A stretch of 64,000 nucleotides of DNA, from NCBI RefSeq assembly GCF_964194025.1, contig NC_134473.1, forward strand, positions 74,648,001 through 74,712,000. The letters run 5' to 3'. This document shows, piece after piece, positions 19,480-63,600 of the stretch (positions are counted from its first letter, which is position 1; every line of letters starts with the position of its first letter). Both the position numbers and the translations under genes were made by a program. The notes beneath the pieces are model-generated. The model had not been told where the DNA came from, ran no database searches, and was given only the letters and a program-made list of their open reading frames with translations. Origin of the DNA: Convolutriloba macropyga. Taxonomy: Eukaryota.

Positions 19480-20845
19480 TTAAAAGACTGGTTTTGAAAG
19501 TAATTTATTTGTCAATTTGGAAACAAAACTTGAATACGCAGGCTCTGGTCCCATTTTAAAATGTCTTCTCATCAGACCATTCCAGACGATGTTGACTTCT
19601 GATCGGACTCTGTCAAAACAGAATAGCCCATCTTGCGGTGATGCCATATCTTTCGATATGTTATGAGAGTCTGACATCCAATGGACAGTGGAAAAATAAA
19701 CGTTGATCAACTAACAGAACGATTTCAAATGGAAAACTTAATTTTTATTGTTTCTATGATTGGATGCGATCCATATCTAAAAGAGGTTTTTCCTTGTTGA
19801 TTTGGAAAGTTTAAGTCAATGTGTAAATGTTTATAATTATGTCTATATTTAAAATTATGTCTAAATTTAAGCCTAATTTTAGACAAAATTGGTCGATTCT
19901 GGCCAATGTTGCCCAGTAGTGCAATTTTAAAGTGATATTCAAGTTACGGTAATCAAAAGTGAGGTGTTTTTGCGTTATTAAACTTTCTAATGAATTTTTT
20001 GCGCTATTTGTGCGTTCAAAATCAGTGAAGCAGTGATCGTTTTGTGGAAACTTGACAGTTTGGGGTGTATAAAAAACCACCAACATTACAATTGTTACAT
20101 TGGCATAATATAACGATATAATGTTTTTTTTCCTTTTTTAAAGGACGTCTGGTTACATAAGTTTAACTCTAAACGTTAGATAATGTCTTTATAATTTGGA
20201 GATTGACAACCACTAAACTGCAGTTCAGTGTTCAGTTGCTATTTTCTAAGTTTTAGTTTCAGTGATTTTGTAGTTTGCAATCATTGAAAATAGCCCAATG
20301 CTAATTCCCTATGAGTGATTGACGAACTCAGAATCTTGAAAACATCCTGGATTCAAGCTTGCAAGTGACTGTATAAAGGTGCCAAGATGTTTGCAAGGTT
20401 CTTGCATGTTTTTCGTGCAGAAATCTTGAAAAATTTTCAATTCCAATATTTGCGAAAGGAAGCCACGAGGGAGGAAGTCGGGTTTTCACAGCAGAAACTT
20501 TTTCTTAGCTTTTCCCTGGGCGCTTTTAACTTCCTTGACAACTAGAGCCTTTTCATTGATGAGTTAAGAACAGCGCACCTAACAATAAATGGGACTTTAC
20601 CTTTTTCGGCTCCCGTCCTACGATTAGACTATCGTCCAGACTGTAGCCTCTGGCGAGACTTTTGTAAAACTTATCATTGGTTTGCTTTACAGATTTTTAT
20701 GTTGGTCCAGACTTGAGTGCGATCGAACGTTTTGAGAAATAATCCAGCCCTCACACTCCGCCCTCATGTGCAACCCAAATGTTGGTCGTCTTGGTATGGA
20801 ACCTCAAACTGAAGTTTGACCATTAGCGGTCGTCAAAAAAGTATC
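19480..20845 (-). pseudogene. Possible two-exon pseudogene fragment of unknown family
   Basis: Exon-like block 20845-20601 (tttgtag acceptor, aag|gtaaag donor, three in-frame stops) splices in phase to 19710-19480 (ctgttag acceptor; LINVYFSTVHWMSD...). Confidence 0.3.
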
Positions 20846-20988: not shown

Positions 20989-23900
20989 CTATCGCTGAGC
21001 GACGTTGATGCTGCGCTTCAGCGGGTTTTGTGGAGCTATAGGCTGAGTTGACAGAATGACCGCTAAGTTGGAGTGCCCGTGAACACCTGTCTGTTCAGGC
21101 TGGAACTGTGAGTCATACTCTTCGGCTGACAAAACTCTCGCTCTCACAGGAAGTGTGAAGATTTCTACCTGGAATGAACAGATTCTAAATCATGAATAGC
21201 GAAAGAAATATTAAACTGCCCGGGTTGAGGTTTGAAGGCTAAAATTTGCAGAAGAAAAAAATGAAGAATTGTGGTGAATACAGTCACCATTTCAAGGATT
21301 TAGCTTGCAATTTTCATCAAAACTCAGGGATTTGAAAAAATTTCTGAACATTTATGCAAGAATTGCGGCGAATGCGGTGAATAAAAGATTGAAAGAAAAA
21401 CATGCTTCCAGGCGTCACTTGATTAGATTTTTCAGAGCATATTGACGACCTGTCAAATTTAAGCGATGTGTTCTTTTTCTGTATATAAAACCTTGATTAC
21501 TGGGGAAAAAATGATAATGTTCCGTTTTTCAATTTATTTTGAAAAGTTAAGTTTATCTGATAATGACTTGCGTGAAATGTCCGATATTACCGGTCATTTT
21601 GCATTTGTTTTTGAAATTCATAAAGAAAAACAATCACTGCACTAACACTATTTAGTAAAAGGTTTATAAAAGGACATCTTTTTATTGACAAGAATCGGGT
21701 TCATTATTATCAGATTATAAGAATTGTGCTTTACCTCCGTAGTTATAATCAGCTCATGTATTAAATCGTCTTCCTGAGCTGTCGGCTTATTGCCCACGTC
21801 AGAAGTTTGCCCAGCCGCGACTTCATTCTCGTCTTTTGGGTTCGCCAGGGCAAACAAAACGAGCTCAAGTTGCTGCGACATTCCGGCTGCAACCGCCCCG
21901 GGGGGTTTGTAGTTAACACTTAACCCCGTTGAGAGTGGGGGAGATTTCACTCTAAATCGGCAGTTTTCAAGCCCTATGTTTTTCACCATAATGTCAATTC
22001 CGTATGTATATCCCTCTCTTAAAGTTCCGAAGTTGAGTTTTGTTGGACGAACTAAGAAGCCACGAAGAGCGCCCATGTGACTTGGGTTAACAGCACCCGC
22101 GATTGACGTGGTGTTGGATCGCCTCTTCACAGGGTTCTCAACTCGGAGAAACTAAACGGAGACCAATATTTAATGCTTTGAACATGTTTACAACTTCGGT
22201 GAAATAGCCATCTATAATCATCTATAATTTGTTTCTTTTTACAATTCAAAGAGTTTGAATTGTATTGGGGCGCTGTCGTTTTTTTAAGATCTGTTCACAC
22301 ATTTTCATGATTTTTGAAGTCAAATTGGAGTTGTGATTTTGGTCACGCCGAAACAGGAAATGGAGCGAAAAAGCGAGTGGTTTTGCGGCGTGAATTTTTT
22401 TCGCTCTTATTTTAAAGTAGAGTGAGAAAACGGTGTTTGAACAAAAATTCGGTTTCTCGGTAGTGGTTTTTTGTTCACATGCGGCAATTTCACTCTGATT
22501 TTTACTGTTTTTTCGATTTTTTGGATCGGATTTTTTCTAAATGGTTTTCCCAATCCATTCACAGCTCATTCTAGGCCTAGTTTTTTGTTTGAATTAAATT
22601 TTCATTTCTCGCTAGTGGTTTTTTTGTTCACATGCGACGTTTTGACGTTGATTTTTTGTTTTTTTTTTCCTATTTTTTGATCTGATTTTTTTAAAATGGT
22701 TTTCTCAATTCACTCATAGTCCATTCTAGGTCTAGTTTTTCTGTTTAGTCGATGAAAATTCTTTGAATTGTACGTCAGGAGTTGTCTGCTATGATTTTTG
22801 TTACGACCATATGACGTCACAGCCACTTTTTGTTCATTCGTTCAGGCAATTTCAACAAAATTGCATGTGTGACGTCATTTTTCGCTCATTTTTAGTGGAG
22901 CGAGTTTTTTGTTCATGCGCGTGATTAAATTTTTGGTCACACTTGACTTACCTCACTCTCAAAAATGACTTCCTCACTTTGAAATTGACTTTTATTTACT
23001 TTAATTCAAAGAGGTAAGGTCAAGTGGGTTTGTGTCACTCTAAATGAAGGTTATTTGAGATCAGCTAGTAGAGGCAGCAATAACTTATTAGGATTTTTAA
23101 TCAAAATATAACAGATCAGCCTTCAATGAAAAGACGAATTTTTTTTGGTCTGTCTTTTTTACTGTTTTTCTTAGACTGCCGATCTACGACTCCATTGCGG
23201 CTATTTTCCGGCAGTCTGCCAGCTATGTTATTAACTTAATTGGCTAACAATTAACCAAGCATTTACAGAGGATAGGATGTATATAGTCCAAATGATTAAA
23301 AAAAAACCCTTTTTTAATTTTATTTTAGCCATTTTTATTTCAATTCTTCTGCACTGTTGAGTTTATAAATGGTGCTTAAAGTAATAATAATAGTCAAAAA
23401 AGATTTTGCTTGAACAGTTTTTTTGGTTCTATTGCGCTTTAGTTTTTAATTAAAGCGCAAATTTTAAATAATCTTTTGTACGACTTTCTATTGTAATGAC
23501 AGTCTTTTTGCTATTGTCTAGGCTGTTTCTGTCTTGCCATGCTACGTATTTATGGAAAGGTATTTATGGAAGTGAAGTGAAATGTAAAATCAAAATTTTC
23601 TTATACAGCAGCAGCATAAATTATCATCGTACAGTTCCTAAGAATTTATTACCGTTGAATCTAAATTGGATTGATCACATAGCTTAAGTGAAAATGTTCC
23701 CCCTTGCAAATTTCTAGTGGTCTGTTTCAGGGAAAAATTTCCTCTCCTTTTCATCGGGAATGAGTGGACAAGTCAATTCTTGTGCTATTAAAGGCAGCAG
23801 CATGTTCTTAGCCAGTGACCACGTGTACAACAGGTTCGTGGACTTGAAAAAGAGAGAGACTATTACTTGTTAACAGACAAAATCAACTCGCTTTGTGTGT

Positions 23901-47214: not shown

Positions 47215-50200
47215 CTATTGCATGGGTGAAACAGGCAAGGGATAAATAAGGCTGGAACTAGACTTGGACTCATGCAACACTTTCTCATTGTCAGCCAGAA
47301 GTTGGTAGCCAGCATCCACGTCACTGCAGTTCAACACTGCATAGACAGCCCCTACTGGATCGCCTACCACTACCTAACCAAACATCTAATATTTGTAAAA
47401 AAAATTATGGGAATATCAATAAAATGGTTGTCACATTGAAAATCGCTCGTTTTTTTCGATTTAATTTCCTGGATAATAGTTTTAAAAAACCCTAAATCCT
47501 GTTTCGACATTCACGCAGAAGCATGTCAACTATTTCTACAAATACTGCTTCAAAAAAAATATACAAGCAGATGATTGTTACCAATTGCAGCCGATCTGAT
47601 TCGAAAAAAGTATCAGAAAAACTTTTTGTATCGACGGGTAGTACAATAAAGTTTTACCTTGAATTTAGCCAAAATAGCAACTGATTCAGCAGAGTTTTCT
47701 GGAATGCAGAAGTTGTCCAGAAAAACGTTGCCAGCATTTTGTGAATAAATGTAGTAGTAGAAACCAGGTTTGAAGACAGGCTCGTCAGGTACTCGTCCTA
47801 TATTCTACACAACTCACAGAGATAGAGATTTATAGTGTTTGTTCAGAATGTTTCCAACTCTCAGTTTAAAATCAAAAAGTCAAGAATCTATACTCAAGAG
47901 TTAGGGCATTTACGTTTGGCACTACTTGGATGCACACTATTGATCTTTAACTAGTAAATGTTCATAAAATTTCGTGAAATAGTAAAAGTTCATAAAATAG
48001 TAAGATCGTTACGTGATCTCAGAAGTCATTTTTAGCGGGGTAAGTCACGCACCTTACCTAAAAGCAGAAAAAATGACGTCATGTGCACATCTTTTAACAG
48101 CAAAGCAGTAGAGGTCACTAAAAGTCACTAAAATTCCAAGAAGTCACGTCGTAAGAATCATCGATGGAGACGACGAATTAAAAAACATAGCAGGACAAGT
48201 CCTGACGTACAATTCAAAGAATTTTCATTAACTAAACAAAAAAAACTAGACCTAGAATGGAATATCAGTGAATTGAGAAAACCATTTAAAAAATCAGATA
48301 AAAAAAAAACAAAAAAAAACAAAAAATCAATGTCAAAATGCCGCATGTGAACAAAAAAAACTACTGTCGAGAAATTAAAATTTAATTCAAACAAAAAACT
48401 AGGCCTAGAAAGAGCTGTGAATGGATTGGGAAAACCATTTAGAAAAAAATCCGATCCAAAAAATCGAAAACACCGTAAAAATCAGAGTGAAATTGCCGCA
48501 TGTGAACAAAAAATCACTACCGAGAAACCGAATTTTTGTTCAAACACCGTTTTCTCACTCTACTTTAAAATTAGAGCGAAAAAAATTCACGCCGCAAAAC
48601 CACTCGCTTTTTCGCTCCACTTCCTGTTTCGGCGTGGCCAAAATCACTACTCCAATTTGACTTCAAAAATCATGAAAATGTGTGAACAGATCTTAAAAAA
48701 AAAAAGACAGCGCCCCAATACAATTCAAATTCTTTGAATTGTAAAAAACAGGACAAGTCCTGAAACACAATCCTAAGAATTAAATGAAAAACTTAGAAGT
48801 ACTCTACCTGACCAGCAGATCAATTAAACAAAGCCAGCCAAAACACAAACAAACTCATCTCAAAAAGTTTAGAAACTAAAACAAACAAACCGAACAAAAA
48901 TATACTCATTGCTAAAACTCTTGAAGCTTATACCCCGAAGGCAAAATTTGATCCCTTTGATGCCTATTTCAAAAAAATGTACAACACCAACTCTTGTCTC
49001 TGAAATCGGTCCAGTGTTATATCTGCAAGACCTAAAAAATATCCATTGGCCCTTGAAGATCGATTAATTCACAAAATGACAGAATATAAAAAAAATTGAA
49101 ATCAAATAGAAAATTTTAATAATGTTGCCGAAAGTCGTGATATTCATATCTTCAGAAAAATTTCTGCGTCTCTAGAGGATATTCAGTAACCCAACTGCAA
49201 GCCTAAAAAATCCATTGGCTCAAAGATCGATAAACTAGGTAAAAAACAAAAATTTTCAGAAAAAAATTCAAATTTTATCAAAAATAGAACTCCATTCTAT
49301 TAAAATATTGAAAACCACTACATTACGCTTAGCAACTATTTAAAAACATACTATTAAACCCAGGAGGACGCTACCTGGCTAAACTAAACAAATGTTTACA
49401 AAAAATTTTGAAAATTGCGGATTTCATCAAAAAAAAAACTTCAAATTCAAAATGTTTAATTGCTGGATACAAATCCATTGATACTAAAAACCATGCAGTA
49501 ACTCTTTATGAGACCATGGATTAGGATTTCTGGTCCTTAAGACTAGACAAAAATTGACAATTTTATGAAAAAATGAAAAAATTACATATTTTATCAAAAA
49601 AGCTAAAATTCGAGACATTAAAATGCTGAAAACCATTCCATAATACTAAAAACTATGCAATGACCTATAATCAAACCCTAAAGGAGATTTCCTTGCCCAT
49701 GAAGCTGGAAAAACTCAGAATGACAAAAAATTTTCGAAGAACTTAAAAAAAATTAGTATCACTTTGCGTGTTTGTGTTTGTAGTACCAAAACAAAAATCT
49801 CATAAAATGGTCATAACAAATCATTTTGGCTCACTGCAGACCTGCATCAACTTGTAAAAAGTTCAACCTAAGACTAATCAAACAGAGAAGTCAAAAAATC
49901 ACAGAAAAAAACCAGTTTGAGCTCAAAAACTCCTATAAATGACCATTTAACCTTGAATTAAGGCCATCCCGGCAGTTGCACCACTCTAAGCACTTGAAGG
50001 GCTGCTAAAGCCCACTTTGGGCCTCTAATGAAACTTAATGCCCGCAGGGCTTTACCTGTTTATCTCGTTTTGAAAGATGAAACACATTTAAAAATATGTG
50101 AAAACATCTTAAAAAGACAGCGCTCCAATACAATTCAAATTCTTTGAATTGTAAAAAACCACGATTTACTCAACAATAGCCGCTATCGCTTCGCGGCTAT

Positions 50201-53200
50201 TTATAAATAAACAGAAAAGGTCATTTTTGAATTATGAACACCGAATAATTGAATAAATAGATAGATAGATTAATAGATAGAGAGGTAGGAAAAGCACACA
50301 TCATGAACTAAATTTAAATTCACGCCACGTTAATTGGTCGAATTGAATTTGGCCTGGGTCGTTCAAAAATTTGGCCTGGGTTCCTCAAAATTTGCCCTGG
50401 GTCATTCAAAAGCTTATTGTAACATACCTTTTATTGTTACATTCGCATAAACATCAACCACTTTTCAATGTAACATTCGCATAAGGATGATTGAGTATCT
50501 CATTTCTTTGACTGCTAGCAAGCATAATTTGAACAGATACAAGTTTATGGTAGGTAGCACATGGCGAAGAAAATCGGTAAAAAATTCTTACTTAAAAAGC
50601 TAAAAAAGTATAACCAACGCTGGCCGATTGCTTCGTAGAGCTGTAGTCTGAAAATACCAAAAAATGCGACCTAAAAACCATGACAAACACTAACTGATGT
50701 CTAACTTGATTTGGACTTCTGTATTGTTTTCAAAAGTTGCTCTCAAATAACCTTCAATTATATTGATATACCCCCATTTGACGATCACTGCTCATATTGA
50801 AGTAATTGAAGGCATTTTGAGAAGAGAGTGAGGAAAGTCTTGACTTAAAATGTATCCATGCAAATGAAACAAAACTCGCTTCAATAAGTTTCAATAATGA
50901 CACGCAAGCCTCAGTACAAAATTGTATCAAAAAGTGAACAAAAATGATTTGAAGTGGTCATTGGAAGTCCTGAACTCAAGTCACTAACTGAACACCAACA
51001 AAACCTAGCAAAGTCAGAACAGCCATTTAGATAAAATTCCGATTAAAAAGCTCCAGTTAAAACAAGCCAAAACAATCCGAACGTGAACAATAATCATTAT
51101 CACAAAAATAAATTTTTCAAGTACCGTTTTGTTAATCAGCTTGATTCGAGTGAAAAAAATTCACGTCACAAAAGTATTCGCTTTGTTTTGCTCCACTTCT
51201 TGTTTTAGCTTGATCAAAATCACCCATCCATTTTGACTTCAAATATCAAACATAACCGACAAAAACGTCGGAAGAACTTCTTTCGAACGACTAGTGCGAG
51301 CTCTAATCAATTGCAGCCTGCTTCAGTCGGGGGGGGGGGGGGCTAAATCGGACTAAAAAGCTCAATAGTAGGCTTCAAATAACCACATTAGTGGTTGACA
51401 TATACCACTATTAAAATTTAAAATGAAAAATGGCACCAGTTTCGGCGCACTTTTCAGTTGACTCTTAGTACTAAATTGCCGCCAGTTGAGTTCAGCTGTT
51501 TGAAATTGTGATTGAGAGAGAATTTTAGATCACGCGAAACGCAAAAAGTCAAGGGCGTAAAAGTCATTCGAAAAGTCAAAGCCCTCAAGCGAAAGTTTCG
51601 CATAAAAAGACACACACGTTTACAATAATTGCTATGAGCTTCGTTCAAGAGCAATTAATAAGAAGTGTAAACAGATCTTGAAAAAGAAAAAGTAGCTAAG
51701 ACCAAGAGACGGCCAAAAGTAGCTTGCTCTCCTCAGCAATCGCAGCTATTAATAAAATTTATATTGGTATCCAAACTGTTTGCAAACAATGCTTGTTCGG
51801 CTGCCGTAAATTGACTTCAGCGGCTGAAAATTGTGAATTGAGTAATTTAGATGACGCACAACTTAAAGAGATCAAGGGTGAAAAAATCAGAAGGAAGTCG
51901 ATGAAGGAAAAAAATCCCATTAATAAAGACACGCATGACATTAATACCTTCGCACTTTGTTCGAAAGCAGTTAAAAGACACACTACTGCAGTAACTGCAG
52001 CAAACTTAATTGGAGAGCAGTTAAACACTTAAATCGTTTAAACAGGTACTGTCAGTTTATGGAAAACATCTTCGGTCACGATGAAATCGGTCCAAACTGA
52101 TTATCGGGACAATTAAGAATTAGGAGATCGCTTAATGATCAAGTTGACCAAACTTCACACGTGACTCAATTACTGCTGCTCGTGGTAAATTACAGTTCAC
52201 CATTTGTATTGTCAATATACAAAAAAAATATCAAATAGAAACATACAAAGCTCTTCAAAAAATGACAGTTTTATCATTTAGAACTTCGGTTGTGTGCTGT
52301 TTTTTTGTCGCCGATGAGTTTTTACTGACAGGCTAAAATCGTCTTTCAAAAAACTATATACTATTGAAACTGATTAATTAATATTTCTCAATAACAAAAC
52401 AAATCGATTACGCAAAACCAATCTTTAGTTCGTAAGAACCGCAGTGATATCACTATTAGCCATTACCAAAAACCAAAACAGGGCATGAAAATCAATGGAA
52501 ATTACAATTGTAAGCTCGCAATTTTAATTAACATTGAATTGGACGGCGGTTCACTGGCAAATTTTAAAGAAGCCACCGTATTATACTAGCAAATTAGCAT
52601 CCTTTAAACGGTTTTATTTTTGCGCTATTTTTTATCTCGAACCCTGCAAAGATGGCTCGTCTGCCACTGCCAAGTGTCGGCTAGTTTGGGATAGAATGCA
52701 GTCCACCTCTCATTCCCAGCCAGAGACTGTCTAACTGCGGCCCTCTCAGCCACACTCGGGTAGGGCCAGATATGGAAAACTTGGCTTAGAGTTCCCACCT
52801 CTGTTCGCCAAGAGCCAAGCGGCTACAATCAGGTTCCAAGGAACTGCTGCTAAATTTGAATTCATTGCCAAAATCTTTTTTATTAATGTTGCACTGTGAA
52901 CATACTGCACAATTAAAAAAAATTCGAAGTAGAGACTACTAAAGTTATAAAATAGGTATAACCAACCAAAAAAAGCAGAAGCTTTCTGTGAGTTTTCTGT
53001 GTCTTACTTGCCGGAGCAACATGTTTTCTCAGCATAGGATTTTTCACTATAGGAAAAGTTTCACAAACAACACTCACAATTACCATCACTTGGGGAATTC
53101 AAAAATTAGAAAAAGAATGTCATTCAAAAAATAATCGAGTCAAAAAATAATGGGTTAAAATATTTTGCAGTACAGCTACAGTTCCTTGGACGCTTTCAGC

Positions 53201-53361
53201 CTCTCTTTGAAATCATCCGAGCTATTCAATTTGATAAATTCTGGGAATTTCTTCGGATGACACTGGTATACCCGTACTTCATATAACAGGTCACTGGAAG
53301 CAGAATTACTAACAAACCTTCGTGACAATTTTGAAACAAACTGAAGTCTATGATTCAACAT
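47215..53361 (-). CDS. NIPSNAP-family mitochondrial protein (NIPSNAP3-like); exons 53361-53185, 52822-52643, 47804-47658, 47373-47215 (220 aa); intron 1 apparently GA-AG
   Basis: Transit-peptide-like start, LYEVRVYQCHPKKFPEF..RLKASK/PLGSWRTEVGTLSQVFHIWPYPSVAERAAVRQSLAGNERW, C-terminal LIYPLPVSPMQ*; all exons are multiples of 3. Confidence 0.85.
48181..48743 (-). mobile_element. Complete HINE-like family 1 copy, inverted relative to 22240-22799
   Basis: caggacaagtcctg (48191-48204) plus tacaattcaaag; palindrome tacaattcaaa-ttc-tttgaattgta (48719-48743); interior is the reverse complement of the 22.2-kb copy. Confidence 0.8.
48749..50153 (-). mobile_element. HINE-like family 1 derivative with different internal sequence, abutting the previous copy
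   Basis: caggacaagtcctg at 48749-48762 and terminal palindrome at 50129-50153; interior resembles 32400-33370 and 43050-43690. Confidence 0.6.
51400..51657. repeat. Dispersed repeat (~260 bp), second copy at ~56770-57017
   Basis: Shared tataccac..tttcggcgca..gttgagtt.agctg..aaagtcaagg..cgaaaagtcaaa..cttcgttcaagagcaatt. Confidence 0.75.
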
Positions 53362-56300
53362 ATTACAGGAATGCCCGCAGAGTAATTACGAATGAGAAAA
53401 CTAAAATATTTAGTTCAGTTTAATGTTTGTCAGAGATAAAGTTGAATGTCTCCAGATGAAGGTGAATGCGTGACTAAATTAAATAACACAAAATCACTCT
53501 CGTAGCTTCTCGTAGACTTTCGTAGCTTAAGCATGATTAAAGATAAACACAATTGTACGTAATCGAACTGTCAGACAACCAGGGTGGACGCCGTATTGCC
53601 CAACAGGGCGATTAGCCGACAACGCAAAAAATGAGGAATTAATATTAAACAGTCGGCTAAATTTCTCATATTTTCCTTGTCGACTAAACGCCCTGCCGGC
53701 CAATTTTCCGAGCACCAAAAACCAGACTCAATCGCATGAAAAAGAACAGATATCAGCGTACCAAAAAAATGCTGGATAGAGCCGGGACTGGCCGCTGAAA
53801 TTGCCAATCAAAAGTATGAAGTTTAACAGAAATAACGTTTGTTAAATTCAAAGCATTTAACTTTTGTTATATTTGCTATTACAAACGGTTAGTCTTAATT
53901 CTATCTATCGTTGAATATGAATGCAAAATTTTGCAAAATGACTTGGACGCTCAGAAGATTTACAAAAGATACTAAGAACGAGAAAAATGGTTACCCGACG
54001 TGGGTGTTGATTTTTCACGAAAATAGGTCTTAAGCTTGGGTAAAAAGTGGCGATTTCTTCAATCGAGTCTCTATTCTCGCGTCCAAATACTGAACCCACT
54101 TTCGAGCCGGCGGCTTTAATTTTCATTTCACGTATAACCGGGAATTTTCGGTTTCCTTTTAGAGCATGAGACAACCCTTCATTAAAATTTAACGGGAGGC
54201 TCAGATCTATCCTCATTTGAGCTGAAATCCTGCAACGAAATACAGCTAAAGCCATTCTGAGAGCAGTTGTATGTGTAAAGATAAAAATTAATGTACCTAG
54301 CAAAGAAAACTCACTATAATGAGCGACTAATTTCCCCGCGGATACAATTCACCTATCGCAGCTGTAAATACGAACACGCTTTAATTGGGTTGTGTGAGAG
54401 CGCGAGAAAAAGTAGGTGTACACAAAGTTTCTCTAAGGGAGCGAAATTTCTTGATCGTGTGCAGACTTTTCCAAGCAGTTCTTTGAGTTTACACCTTACA
54501 TTGTTTTTTGGGTTAAGTCGTTTTTTAAACCATATTGACAAGCAACTGTACAATTGCGGTCATTTTTGACCTTATTCTCAATCATATATCAGAGTTTTAT
54601 ATGCAATCTTCAGCTTTTTCCTGATTTCCTTGTTAAGCCTTTAGCGGTTTTTGTTCTCCTTTTCATGTTGTTTGTGCATAAGGTAATTTCCTTGGTTGAA
54701 ATACGTTTTTATGTTGGTTTTCATGACCTTTTGATTTCGGTAATGACAGAATAAAATCGTTTTAGTTGACAAAATTACGCTAATTATAAAGTTTTTGCGT
54801 AGTTTCTCTGATTTTGAATTTTTTTCCTCATTCTCCTGTCTTTATGGCTCTCAGATTATTTTTAAGATCAATTGGATCAATTGTTTAATTAGCATTGTTG
54901 AAAACAATTGAGCTAGTTAGCTGTAAAACAAGTAAACAATTAAAGGTCTGTTAGCACATATTTTTATAAATTATATAACCAATTTCGCAGTTTTTGTAGT
55001 TTACATTTCTCGCTGGTCTTTTAAATGTTTCCAATGCTTTTGGTCGTCGCTAGGGTACTAAATGAATCAACAGGAACTGTTTCTTAAGGTGTTTTGAAAA
55101 CAATTTTTGAGACGTCGAAAATTTTAGAGAATATTATTGGAAAATTTAAGTTTTTTGTCCGTATTTCTTTTCTTTTTTCTCGGTTTTCTCCTTTTTCGTT
55201 GTTTATGCTGCATCGTTGTTTAAGTTTTCCCGGCATCTGACATTCTTTTGTTGAACACAATTTTATTTTCCCGGACAATCTAAGCAATGCCTTTCAAAGA
55301 TGCTTTTGCAGTTCAGTTTATGAAATGTTTCGAAGAACTTACCTTATTTTACTCTCGAGCCACAAACTTCAATTTCGAACAAGAGCAATTGAAATCAGTC
55401 AAAATGGAGAAGTGAATCGCACAATGTTATAGAGAATGAAATCACACAATGTTCTAGAGCAGAAGCAAAAATTTTGCATAAAAACTGACCACCACGGTTA
55501 CAATAATTTCGTTCGAGAGCAATTTATCTCTGATACTCAAATAAACTACAAAAAGTTGGCTCCTTTTAGTATAATACAAGTGCGCCTGAAAACAACAAAA
55601 ACCTTTCTTCTATTCATGAACAATAGGAAAATTTTCAATAAATTGGCCAAACTCGTTTAAGAAAATTTGGATTCTCAACCATTCTATCCTATTTATCAAT
55701 AAAACTGTAATCAGTTGGTAGCTAAAATTTATCTGTGCAAAAGGTGTATTTCGATTCCCAATGAATGGAATAAAACGAAACAGTAGCAAATAAAAGTAGC
55801 CGGCAGACTGCTGGAATAACTGTGAAACAGACTTGCATGTCGTATAATAGATAAAAAGATACAAGTTTAAAGAAAAGGCTATCGACGCCGCTAAAAAAAC
55901 CTATGTAAAACACATTTAGCCATAAATTAACCATGCTTGATCACTTCGCAGCAGACTTTATATTAGGGAACTATATTACACATATGAGTTCCTTTGACCT
56001 TCAACTAATTCAAATTAAAAGAAATTAGAGCAAAAAAATTTCACGCCGCAAAACCACTTGCTTTTTCGCTCCACTTCCTGTTTCAGTGGGACTATCATCA
56101 CTTGACGTTGACCTCAAAAATCATGAAAATGTCTGAGCAGATCTTAAAAATCAAGAAAGTGTAGCTGAATTCTAAAAACCCAGAGCACCGCAATATAGCT
56201 CCGCTCAGCTTACAGCTTTGCCGCTATAATATCTAAATTTGCTTTAAAACCATCAAAAAAGCAGAACAGCCTCCAAATTTGACAGAACCCCAATTAATAA

Positions 56301-58173: not shown

Positions 58174-58593
58174 TTAATAGCCCCCTCTTCCGGGACCACC
58201 TCGCCCACCAGGAGGGCCACCTCGTCCACCGCCCATTCCGCGACCTCGACCTCTTCCTGCGGCAGCCTGAGCTCTTAAGATTCCTGATTTTCCTCGCCCA
58301 GTGCCCATTCCAACACCTTTCTGGCCGCCCCTCTGCATAGTTTTAAACATGGGGGCATTTTTCAACATATCAGGGAGAATGAAAAATCGCACTTTCGAGC
58401 CTCTGATGAATATGTGCTCTAATTGCGCTGTTCGTCCGTTTCTATAAGTTACATGTACTTGAGACATTTGGCAGTTCATATTGTCCTCGGCCTCTAGAAG
58501 TTTACCACGATAGACTTCTCCGGTTGCCGTTTCAATAGTAATCACATGACCTTCAGCCTCATGTAGAATTTTTATCGGAACACCAATAGACAT
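58174..58593 (-). CDS. SNRPD3: Small nuclear ribonucleoprotein Sm D3
   Basis: [43 protein letters not shown]...[23 protein letters not shown] plus RG-rich tail; single-exon CDS. Confidence 0.98.
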
Positions 58594-60687: not shown

Positions 60688-63600
60688 ATGGTAGATACTT
60701 GGTCAACTGTTAACTCCGAGAGCGACCAGAAGGAAACAATTATCTTGAGAAATCTTAACCAATTTTCCAGTGCTCCGACAGAGCGCCTCTTTGAAGAAAA
60801 GCCAGAAACACTTCAAGAACAGAAGATGCTTGAATTCTCCAGAATGATGATAACGGACAATATACATTTTCACCTAGACTACCTAAACTCCTCAATAGAT
60901 GAATCAGAAGATGTTAAAATACTACAGGAAACAGTTGAAGAGATAAAAGAGAAGCAGCGAAAATTTGAAACCGTTTTGTCCCAATTAATAATTCTGATCG
61001 ATCCATCAGAACAGAGCAATTGTTCTCGCGAACATAGTTGTCTTAAGGTAGAAGTTAAAAAGTGTATCAATAATTTCAAAAAATACGTCAAAAGGAAGTC
61101 ACAGATTAATATTGGAGAGGACTTCAGTCTCAGTGTTGGCGTCGCGTCACCAAAAGACCTAGTTGTTCACCGGACAGCTCCAATTTTCAATTTTCTAACC
61201 CAGTTCAACCTGGTCATGATATCAGCGATCAGGAACAATATGCCGTCAGTTCATCAGCACCCGCTGTGAACAGCAATGTCAGTTTTTCTGCTCCCAGCAA
61301 GCAGCTTAGTATTTGATTCTAACGCCGCTCCATCAGCATTGCTTAACATACAATCCTTCAATTGGCCCTCTCCTCAGAGTATTTTCCCTGAAACAAATCG
61401 TAACGCATCAAATAATAATTTTGAACATCGAGGACTTCTAAACGCGGAAAACTCAAACCATTTTTCAACCAGCTCAATGTCAGTATGCTGCCAACAATCT
61501 GTCCCGAAACTGCACGCAGAAACGTTCAACGGAGATCCAATGAAGTGGATAAATTGGTATAGCATTGTCAAAGCAACTATCGACCAATCTTCCATGTCGT
61601 CAGATGAAAAAATGATCCATTTGCAATCATTGCTCACAGGAGAAGCTAATGCACTAGTTGATGGCTATAGTTACATCGGTGATTTATACGCAGCAGCTCA
61701 ATCAAGACTGCAAGAACATTTTGGCAATTCAAAGAGGATTGTCAATGCTTTCCTTGACAAATTATCGAACTTTAGAAATCCATACTTGTCAAATCCGGAA
61801 AGTTATACACAGTACTCCTCGTTTCTTCTAACGCTCGTTGACACCTTTCAACAACTCGGTTTTATTCATGATCTTGACTCCACCATCGACATGAACATAG
61901 CTTTAACAAAATTACAAAATCCAGTCAGACTCGAATGGAACCGTTACTTCCTGGAAAAAACTATCACACAGCCATCCTTAAAGGCGCTTGCTGATTGGCT
62001 TCTAAACTCTGCAAAAGCATGCAGAGATTTACCAGCAAACTCCAACTTGCCAATTTTTCAAAAAAATTGGTGTTCTTAAAATGGTTTGGAAAACTTCACA
62101 CGCTACTAGAAATAGTGATAACCCGAATCCAAACCATCAATTCCTGAGTTACAGGGAACAAATGCAAATTCAGTCTAAGACGAAAGAAAGCGTTATTTTT
62201 CCGAACAATGAAAACTGTCAATACCTCTAAAAATGCCAGCATTTCCAAGCACTGAGTCCCTTGAAAAGGATAGATCATGTAATGAAGCGAAAGCTTTGTT
62301 TCAATTGTTTTGGACATCATCATGTAGATCAATGCAATTCAAAAAGTGTGTGTCGCTCAAAAGGCTGCGGCAAAAGACATAACACACTCCTGCACGATAA
62401 TTATATGAACAAAAAAAAACTCAAACGTTAAGCCAGTGCTATCTGTTGGAACAGGCCTGGTAGCTTTTGTGGCAGTTCAACTGGTAAATGAAAACCAGTC
62501 TGTGAAAACATACGCATATCTAGACAACGGTAGCTGTCAAAGTCAACTTCTGAAATCAACCTTAAGAACTTGGTCTTAACCTCGAAAAAACAGATAAAAT
62601 GCCTTTAAGTGGTTATCACACGACTGAGGAAATTGATTCCTCTAAAGATTGCTTTGACATAAAACCAATATATAGCTCAATCGAAACTGTCATACTTAAT
62701 GATGTTATGGCGGTACCAGATTTGAATATGTGTGCAGTGAATGTAGCTCAAATAAACGCTTTGTGCAAAAACTATGATCATCTCAGTCATATAAATTTTC
62801 TTGAACTTGAATGGAACAATGTCTCAATTGTTAAAGGCATTAACAACTTAGACTTGATTCACTATAAACAAATTATAAAAGGTCCAAAAAAAATGCCCCA
62901 TGGGGCGTTGAAACAACATTAGGCTGGGCGTGCGCCGGAAATACGAATTTAGTTTCCAATAAGTCTACACCTGTACAGTATACTCAGGTGCAAAACTGCC
63001 CTAATATGGACGACTCCTTTTTCAAATTGGTCCAAGATTGGATGAAAGTGGAAAATTTCGGCTTTGCATCGCCCCGAAAAATTTTGTCGGAAAACAATAA
63101 AAGAGCAATTGAAATTTTAGAGTCCACAACCAAGATCATTGACGGTCATTATCAGATAGGTCGCCTCTGGAAGCAAGGTGCATTTCTTCCCAACAACAGA
63201 TGGTTAGCATTAAAACAACTAGATCAAAAACTTTTTAAAAAATCCGCTACTAAAGGGAAAGTACCAAGCTACTCTGTACGCAGACTTGGAAAAAGAATAC
63301 GTTGTTAAAGTTCAGGATTTAGAATCTCTAACAGTTAATGTCTTCTTTTGCCTCATCACCCAGTGACCAATGAAAATAAACCTGGTAAGGTTCGTAGAGT
63401 TGCAAATGCCTCCAGAATTTTCCAGGGTCAGTCCCTCAACTCTAATTTACTGAAAGGGCCATATCTGCTCAGCAACTTAAATGGTGTCATTATGAGGTTT
63501 CGTGAGATTCGAATTGCGCTGTGCGCAGACATAGAACAAATGTTCATGCAAATGAAAGTTGACACTAAAGACCGACCCTACTTACGCTTCCTCTGGAAGA

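Follow-up and report, generated by a model that had tools for sequence, protein, structure and literature searches.

A probable GA-AG intron with complementary ends in a NIPSNAP-family gene of the acoel Convolutriloba macropyga

Few animal introns depart from the GT rule, and the locus described here raises the question of how an intron that does not begin with GT would be recognised and removed in Convolutriloba macropyga, an acoel; acoels are often placed near the base of Bilateria. The stretch analysed (hereafter the window) comprises 64,000 nt of contig NC_134473.1 from NCBI RefSeq assembly GCF_964194025.1 (positions 74,648,001 to 74,712,000 of the forward strand), and all positions are counted from its first letter unless another contig is named. 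On its minus strand lies a NIPSNAP-family gene whose first intron begins with GA, ends with AG and has a perfect 12-bp inverted repeat at its two ends. Judged from the sequence, intron 1 is very probably a real, if unusual, intron whose excision and exact border are predicted. Our favoured explanation, which we hold to be probable, is that it is a genuine GA-AG intron of a functional four-exon gene and that its removal by the major spliceosome joins Lys59 to Pro60.

Gene structure and the border of intron 1

The identity of the gene was established from exon 2, which alone scored 48.5 bits against Pfam family PF07978 (E = 1.1e-12), passing the gathering cut-off of 22.3; in a search of the species' own genome the PF07978 score was 49.1 bits. 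An exhaustive profile search with exon 2 retrieved NIPSNAP-family proteins of roughly 200-220 aa, the best homologue being P0001 (219 aa), with 70% identity over exon 2. When P0001 was compared with the window by tblastn, four exons were recovered on the minus strand (Table 1), whose spliced coding sequence of 663 nt is in frame and encodes a protein of 220 aa; a preliminary description of the locus had taken the gene as two exons and is corrected in this respect. The 220-aa protein is 59% identical to P0001 and aligns with it without gaps from residue 27 to the C-terminus. A protein search with P0001 returned only the query itself, so the collection searched held no transcript-derived C. macropyga protein. 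Overall, we regard the gene as probably a functional four-exon member of the NIPSNAP family, small and of mitochondrial type.

The open reading frame (ORF) of exon 1, which starts at 53361, reads ...RLKASK followed by Glu-Leu-stop; the exon ends with AAG at 53185, and the bases directly after it are GAACTGTAG. Intron 1 starts with GAACTG (its 5′ end reads GAACTGTA) and ends with TTGTAG, and exon 2 begins with CCGCTTGGC (PLGSW), placing the predicted join between Lys59 (AAG, 53185) and Pro60 (CCG, 52822). The coordinates, the GA...AG ends and the 362-nt length given in the preliminary description were reproduced both by direct indexing of the window and by an independent repeat search. In the frame of exon 1 a TAG is reached two codons past the junction (53178-53176), while the codon immediately 5′ of exon 2 is likewise an in-frame TAG, so that no upstream acceptor is possible in frame. 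The expectation that the family alignment would read RLKASK/PLGSW (the slash marks a splice border here and below) was borne out, since the C. macropyga protein and ten database homologues (11 sequences) align without gaps across the junction at ...S-x/P-x-G-x-W.

All in-frame GT, GC, AT, GA and GG donors were then combined with AG acceptors, giving 74 in-frame pairs that were scored. The GA donor at 53184 with the AG at 52823 obtained the top score, and the GC donor at 53193 came second at a cost of three residues. The only in-frame GT-AG pairs (53192 or 53180 to 52784) would delete PLGSWRTEVGTLS, which is identical to P0001 at 12 of 13 positions, with a loss of 13-15 conserved residues (13 for the best pair). 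Earlier statements about the nearby GT dinucleotides were also correct: those at 53191/53190 and 53179/53178 are in phase 2, and that at 53173/53172 lies past the in-frame TAG. At its border with exon 1, intron 1 has no 5′ GT in a frame-keeping phase, as a canonical U2-type GT-AG intron would have. An AG is present at both borders, and cuts at AG..GT, GG..TA or GA..AG would therefore all yield the same mRNA. The acceptor TTGTAG/ resembles those of intron 2 (GTGTAG/) and intron 3 (GGTTAG/). The gap-free homology, the stops on both sides and the purifying selection on exon 1 described below require a non-GT intron at exactly the K/P site.

Four DNA runs (X1-X4), all with flat, DNA-like depth, were examined over positions 47600-53450. 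They contain a second haplotype with 13 listed differences in exons 1 and 3, 11 of them synonymous; the other two are a D>E and a P>A replacement, and the codon of the latter has a further change that is counted as synonymous. Exon 1 alone has four synonymous differences and one non-synonymous difference. Without constraint, about three quarters of changes would alter the protein. The excess of synonymous differences implies that coding selection acts on exon 1 and that some in-frame partner is translated together with it, for which the intron would have to be removed.

The GA donor is not an assembly error. The possibility that base 53183 was a consensus error had been raised in the preliminary description, and the DNA runs match the assembly at the donor: a 1847-nt contig of X1 matches 51633-53450 without difference, while X2, X3 and X4 carry the reference allele together with an alternative allele whose listed differences near the donor fall at 53124, 53164, 53191 and 53215. 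None is listed at 53183/53184 in the four runs, the alternative allele of X3 and X4 retains the donor, and the 3′ arm of the inverted repeat lies within contig sequence that has no listed differences in X1-X4. One X2 contig of depth 2.6 carries a fifth difference, which is not listed. In X4, the contig covering 52829-53122 has a depth of 20.9 (about one allele) compared to about 58 for its neighbour at 52236-52858, and the alternative haplotype may differ in the middle of intron 1 (52859-53093) through an indel or a diverged segment.

Very high-copy repeats fill intron 2, especially at 47800-50340 and 51130-51715; their contig depths, summed for the DNA runs, amount to between hundreds of thousands and millions. 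Outside the DNA runs, all 14 words sampled from exon 3 were present in run X5 (80 M letters of contigs, a separate sample). The C. macropyga genome project included one poly(A) RNA-seq library, made from a separate specimen (PMC13650328; specimen txConMacr14, PRJEB75559), and X5 is most likely this run.

Pairing between the ends of the intron

The perfect 12-bp inverted repeat reported in the preliminary description was recovered by both indexing and repeat search: TCCAAGGAACTG, which spans the border of exon 1 and intron 1, is the exact reverse complement of a segment close to the acceptor (Table 1). The repeat extends to 17 nt at 88% identity (53190-53174 and 52851-52835) with a 2-nt mismatch inside, and the similarity of the arms continues inward in decayed form, as 12 + 3 + 8 matching bases with a 10-nt indel. 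Chance pairing was assessed at 19,583 random places of the window with the same geometry, each a 362-nt segment whose final 50-60 nt were compared with a 40-nt zone around the donor position. In 0.08% of these places there was a perfect inverted repeat of at least 12 bases, and in 0.17% the duplex energy was -28.7 kcal/mol or lower. The stem is thus highly non-random and lies far outside the null distribution.

Folding of the intron with its flanks placed the stem in both the minimum free energy and the centroid structures, where it is predicted to close the intron, although the overall degree of structure of the intron is ordinary (fold z-score of -1.16). The 5′ cut would fall between base pairs 6 and 7 of the predicted helix and the 3′ cut 12 nt past it, and the helix plausibly juxtaposes the splice sites. 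Compared to an end-pairing energy of -28.7 kcal/mol for intron 1, introns 2 and 3 gave -16.7 and -8.8 kcal/mol, respectively, and only the first of the three lies outside the null. The earlier proposal that the weakest donor has the strongest stem consequently holds within this gene for a sample of three introns, on which the suggested compensation of the missing GT by structure would also rest.

Table 1 Features of the NIPSNAP-family gene and its inverted repeat, followed by other content of the window
Feature	Position	Strand	Details
Exon 1, coding part	53361..53185	-	ATG at 53361, end AAG = Lys59; ORF list, tblastn with P0001, in-frame coding sequence
Intron 1	53184..52823	-	362 nt, GA...AG; direct indexing, genome search, donor/acceptor enumeration
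5′ arm of stem	53190..53179	-	TCCAAG/GAACTG, last 6 nt of exon 1 and first 6 nt of intron
3′ arm of stem	52846..52835	-	CAGTTCCTTGGA; ends 12 nt before the 3′ AG
Exon 2	52822..52643	-	PLGSW...HLCR, NIPSNAP domain; in-frame TAG before, donor AGG/GTTCGA after; Pfam, tblastn
Intron 2	52642..47805	-	4838 nt, GT-AG, AGG/GTTCGA...GTGTAG/, full of high-copy repeats
Exon 3	47804..47658	-	NIGRV...KFK; tblastn with P0001
Intron 3	47657..47374	-	284 nt, GT-AG, AAG/GTAAAA...GGTTAG/, single copy in genome
Exon 4, coding part	47373..47215	-	VVVGDP...SPMQ, stop TAG at 47217-47215; tblastn with P0001
LSM-domain ORF	58174-58593	-	139 aa
Exon of CFAP74/HYDIN-like ciliary gene	21648-22130	-	PapD-like Ig domain
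DUF1759 gag-like ORF of retroelement	61276-62079	+	

Splicing machinery and known non-canonical introns

In the mechanism that we propose, the major (U2-type) spliceosome of a lineage tolerating G-N donors would cut intron 1, and the perfect 12-bp helix (17 nt with the internal mismatch) would hold the border of exon 1 and the intron to a site that ends 12 nt before the 3′ AG; the 322 nt that separate the two arms of 17 nt would be looped out and the splice sites brought together. We infer this spliceosomal route, as well as any help from the stem. A major spliceosome with a relaxed +2 position is favoured because the U6 genes are canonical, canonical U1 genes exist, the donor context is AG/GAA, the acceptor is ordinary and the 5′ end is not of the U12 type. 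In the genome (1,175,981,408 bases in 4,694 scaffolds), the U6 genes match the canonical form throughout, ACAGAGA included, and canonical U1 genes (ATACTTACCTG) are present as well, from which it follows that a normal catalytic core is present.

The genome holds 27 U1 small nuclear RNA (snRNA) genes (loci L009-L034), for example at C15:12297861-12298022, C7:54712531-54712688, C10:13481482-13481642 and C1:4038339-4038501, which fall into classes with different 5′ ends and a near-identical body. Besides the canonical ATACTTACCTG, these 5′ ends are GATTACCTG, T(C/T)AAAACCTG, TTTATACCTG and TCAGAACCTG, with single changes in ACTAACCTG and ACTTACTTG. The class GATTACCTG has four copies on two chromosomes with identical 30-nt upstream sequence, and a conserved upstream sequence (TTCTGAATTTAA...) is common to the variant classes. 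Several of the variants would fit donors of the form GTT..., which are frequent in the few introns seen here.

The snRNA variants whose inspection had been suggested in the preliminary description thus exist for the 5′ end of U1, but simple pairing with them was rejected as an explanation of the GA donor because all retain A7, which pairs with U at +2. A U12-type intron was rejected too, as the 5′ end of intron 1 does not fit /RTATCCTT. Where the U12 branch motif TCCTTRAC would be expected (10-26 nt before the 3′ end), TTCCTTGGAAC is found 10 nt before the end, with two extra G. Neither U12 nor U6atac was found in the genome in a search where, out of tens of thousands of candidates, about 45 were scored. 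An embedded RNA gene was likewise discarded, as positions 52500-53500 gave no match in Rfam.

The closest precedents are the GA-AG U2-type introns of Oikopleura dioica and Eurytemora affinis (PMC7072748, and Robertson 2017 as cited there), which have the same GA donor and AG acceptor. As the preliminary description had stated, such donors occur in Oikopleura and in the copepod Eurytemora; they are abundant there, in the context AG/GAA (PMC7072748), and intron 1 (AAG/GAACTG...TTGTAG) has the same features, with AG upstream and A downstream of the GA. However, these species belong to other phyla than Xenacoelomorpha and the account in PMC7072748 reports no end-to-end helix for them, whereas the C. 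macropyga donor lies in the middle of a perfect 12-bp stem. In Fritillaria borealis (Henriet 2019 as summarised in PMC11282704; PMC13326754), introns of conserved genes likewise occupy lineage-specific positions and lack an initial GT, and an adapted major spliceosome is presumed to handle them. According to the same summaries, most of the Fritillaria introns have AG-AC or AG-AT ends, and their source is multi-copy miniature inverted-repeat transposable elements (MITEs), in contrast to intron 1, which has G...AG ends, a single copy and no target-site duplication.

The nonconventional introns of euglenids, as portrayed in PMC3935182, PMC11282704 and PMC12501133, also combine variable non-canonical borders with a helix joining the ends. 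In these accounts, however, euglenids are protists whose introns show a short pairing in fixed register (+4..+6 with -8..-6), a circular excised product, an unknown machinery and no AG rule. This register was not found in intron 1, where positions -6 to +6 (or +11) lie opposite -24 to -13, counted from the 3′ end. The human FGFR 'dead-end' GA donor (Brackenridge 2003, as cited in PMC7072748) is an efficiently used GA 5′ splice site of an animal gene. As described in that citing source, the FGFR site depends on a canonical GT 6 nt upstream; in intron 1, unlike FGFR, 7 nt separate the donor from the closest GT on its upstream side, which is in a different phase and offers U1 a very poor context. 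The searchable library yielded no paper on non-canonical acoel introns.

Origin, alternative explanations and significance

P0001 is encoded by one uninterrupted 660-bp ORF (L008:6001-6660; ENA ERZ25071366, contig ctg20412l), and a NIPSNAP paralogue in the C. macropyga genome runs straight through the sites of introns 1 and 2. Because both the closest homologue elsewhere and this paralogue lack an interruption here, intron 1 is probably a lineage-specific gain. The P0001 contig is 201 kb long and eukaryote-like, and its P0001 gene adjoins a split PFKFB-like gene (6PF2K and His_Phos_1 ORFs). The intronless paralogue is found in two near-identical copies on small unplaced scaffolds (C4354:9377-9643 and C4151:66397-66663; L001 and L002), which are probably haplotigs. 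Another NIPSNAP gene, on chromosome 3, was considered as a further case and set aside, since both of its placeable junctions are ordinary GT-AG and it adds nothing to the non-GT class.

A search of the whole genome with the complete intron returned only the intron itself, and no target-site duplication was seen at the borders, which have no direct repeat except the shared AG. Allowing up to one mismatch, a 16-nt arm has six matches in 1.18 Gb compared to 110 for a control pattern. The inverted repeat reaches 6 nt into conserved coding sequence, and the conserved codons TCC AAG make up half of its perfect arm. This copy is therefore not what a transposon with terminal repeats would leave on simple insertion. 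An introner or MITE origin is not supported for this copy, given its single occurrence, its rare arm and its lack of a target-site duplication. The decayed inward similarity suggests the remains of an older inverted repeat of greater length, which a templated inverted insertion may have produced.

These observations bear directly on whether the stem takes part in splicing. It could instead be a relic of the intron's origin without any splicing role, left either by a small transposon carrying terminal inverted repeats or by an inverted templated insertion during break repair, which we treat as a serious possibility, although one somewhat short of an even chance. The decayed 12 + 3 + 8 similarity looks like such an older repeat; the absence of other copies, the rarity of the arm and the missing target-site duplication argue against it, as does the coding half of the perfect arm, which cannot simply be the end of an inserted element. 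Going further in the opposite direction, the cis helix might act as a built-in substitute for U1, with an intronic segment that pairs with the border, marks the 5′ cut and hands over to the catalytic core, but we consider this doubtful.

The identity of the cut is open to alternatives as well. Removal at K/P by a structure-guided, euglenid-like route, in which the helix itself defines the cuts and no normal 5′ recognition takes place, appears unlikely, and we know of no excision machinery of this kind in animals. A non-canonical border and a stable predicted helix that joins the ends and covers the 5′ cut are the two traits that define euglenid nonconventional introns in the accounts of PMC11282704 and PMC3935182, and AG..GT and GG..TA borders would be equally compatible with the mRNA. 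Nevertheless, the +1 G and the terminal AG are retained, the acceptor is like those of the GT-AG introns of the gene, the pairing is not in the euglenid register and the AG/GAA context suits spliceosomal GA-AG introns (PMC7072748). It is quite unlikely that a real intron is cut at the GC donor 9 nt upstream (AAA/GCGTCC, exon 1 ending at 53194) with the same acceptor, which would give a protein without Ala-Ser-Lys. GC-AG is the commonest non-canonical pair in animals, and this donor is in frame with the second-best score of the enumerated pairs; yet it drops three residues, including a conserved Ser, where all 11 aligned sequences share the same length, and AAA/GCGUCC is without the strong consensus AG/GCAAGU that GC donors normally need. 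Moreover, the codons GCG TCC AAG carry the synonymous haplotype difference at 53191, as coding sequence would. Retention of the insert, with exon 1 as a dead remnant or pseudogene and exons 2-4 expressed otherwise or not at all, would agree with the stop met two codons into the insert and with the lack of RNA evidence for the junction from the runs examined. We hold it to be very unlikely, as the four exons are intact, introns 2 and 3 have good GT-AG sites, synonymous haplotype differences predominate (11:2 in total and 4:1 in exon 1), exon 2 has no start codon of its own ahead of the conserved PLGSW, and exon 3 is present in the probable RNA run X5.

Several points weigh against removal of a GA-AG intron by the major spliceosome. 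A donor buried in a 12-bp helix should hinder rather than help the binding of U1, and no more than about four positions of this donor can pair with canonical U1. The distance between the best YTRAY branch candidate (CTGAT) and the 3′ AG is just 6-7 nt, and the upstream GC donor, improbable as it is, would compete for the same exon. Among the joints listed for the runs examined (X1-X4), which are DNA-like, the repeats of intron 2 predominate, and no spliced read or contig was seen. Finally, the intronless closest homologue could equally be a retrocopy; synteny with its contig, which might have decided between gain and retrocopy, was not found.

How a spliceosome comes to accept non-GT introns is poorly understood, and the predicted GA-AG intron of C. 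macropyga bears on this question. It offers a clean case: in a short gene, stops and homology on both sides fix the junction, two ordinary introns serve as controls within the same transcript and no transposon copies blur the picture. This makes intron 1 a convenient minigene for asking whether pairing of the ends can replace GT. Its absence from both the closest homologue and the paralogue also bears on how new introns arise. If a cis helix did substitute for U1, donors with any base at +2 would become usable and, together with the variant U1 classes, this would amount to a 5′ splice-site code based on structure and variant snRNAs in an animal.

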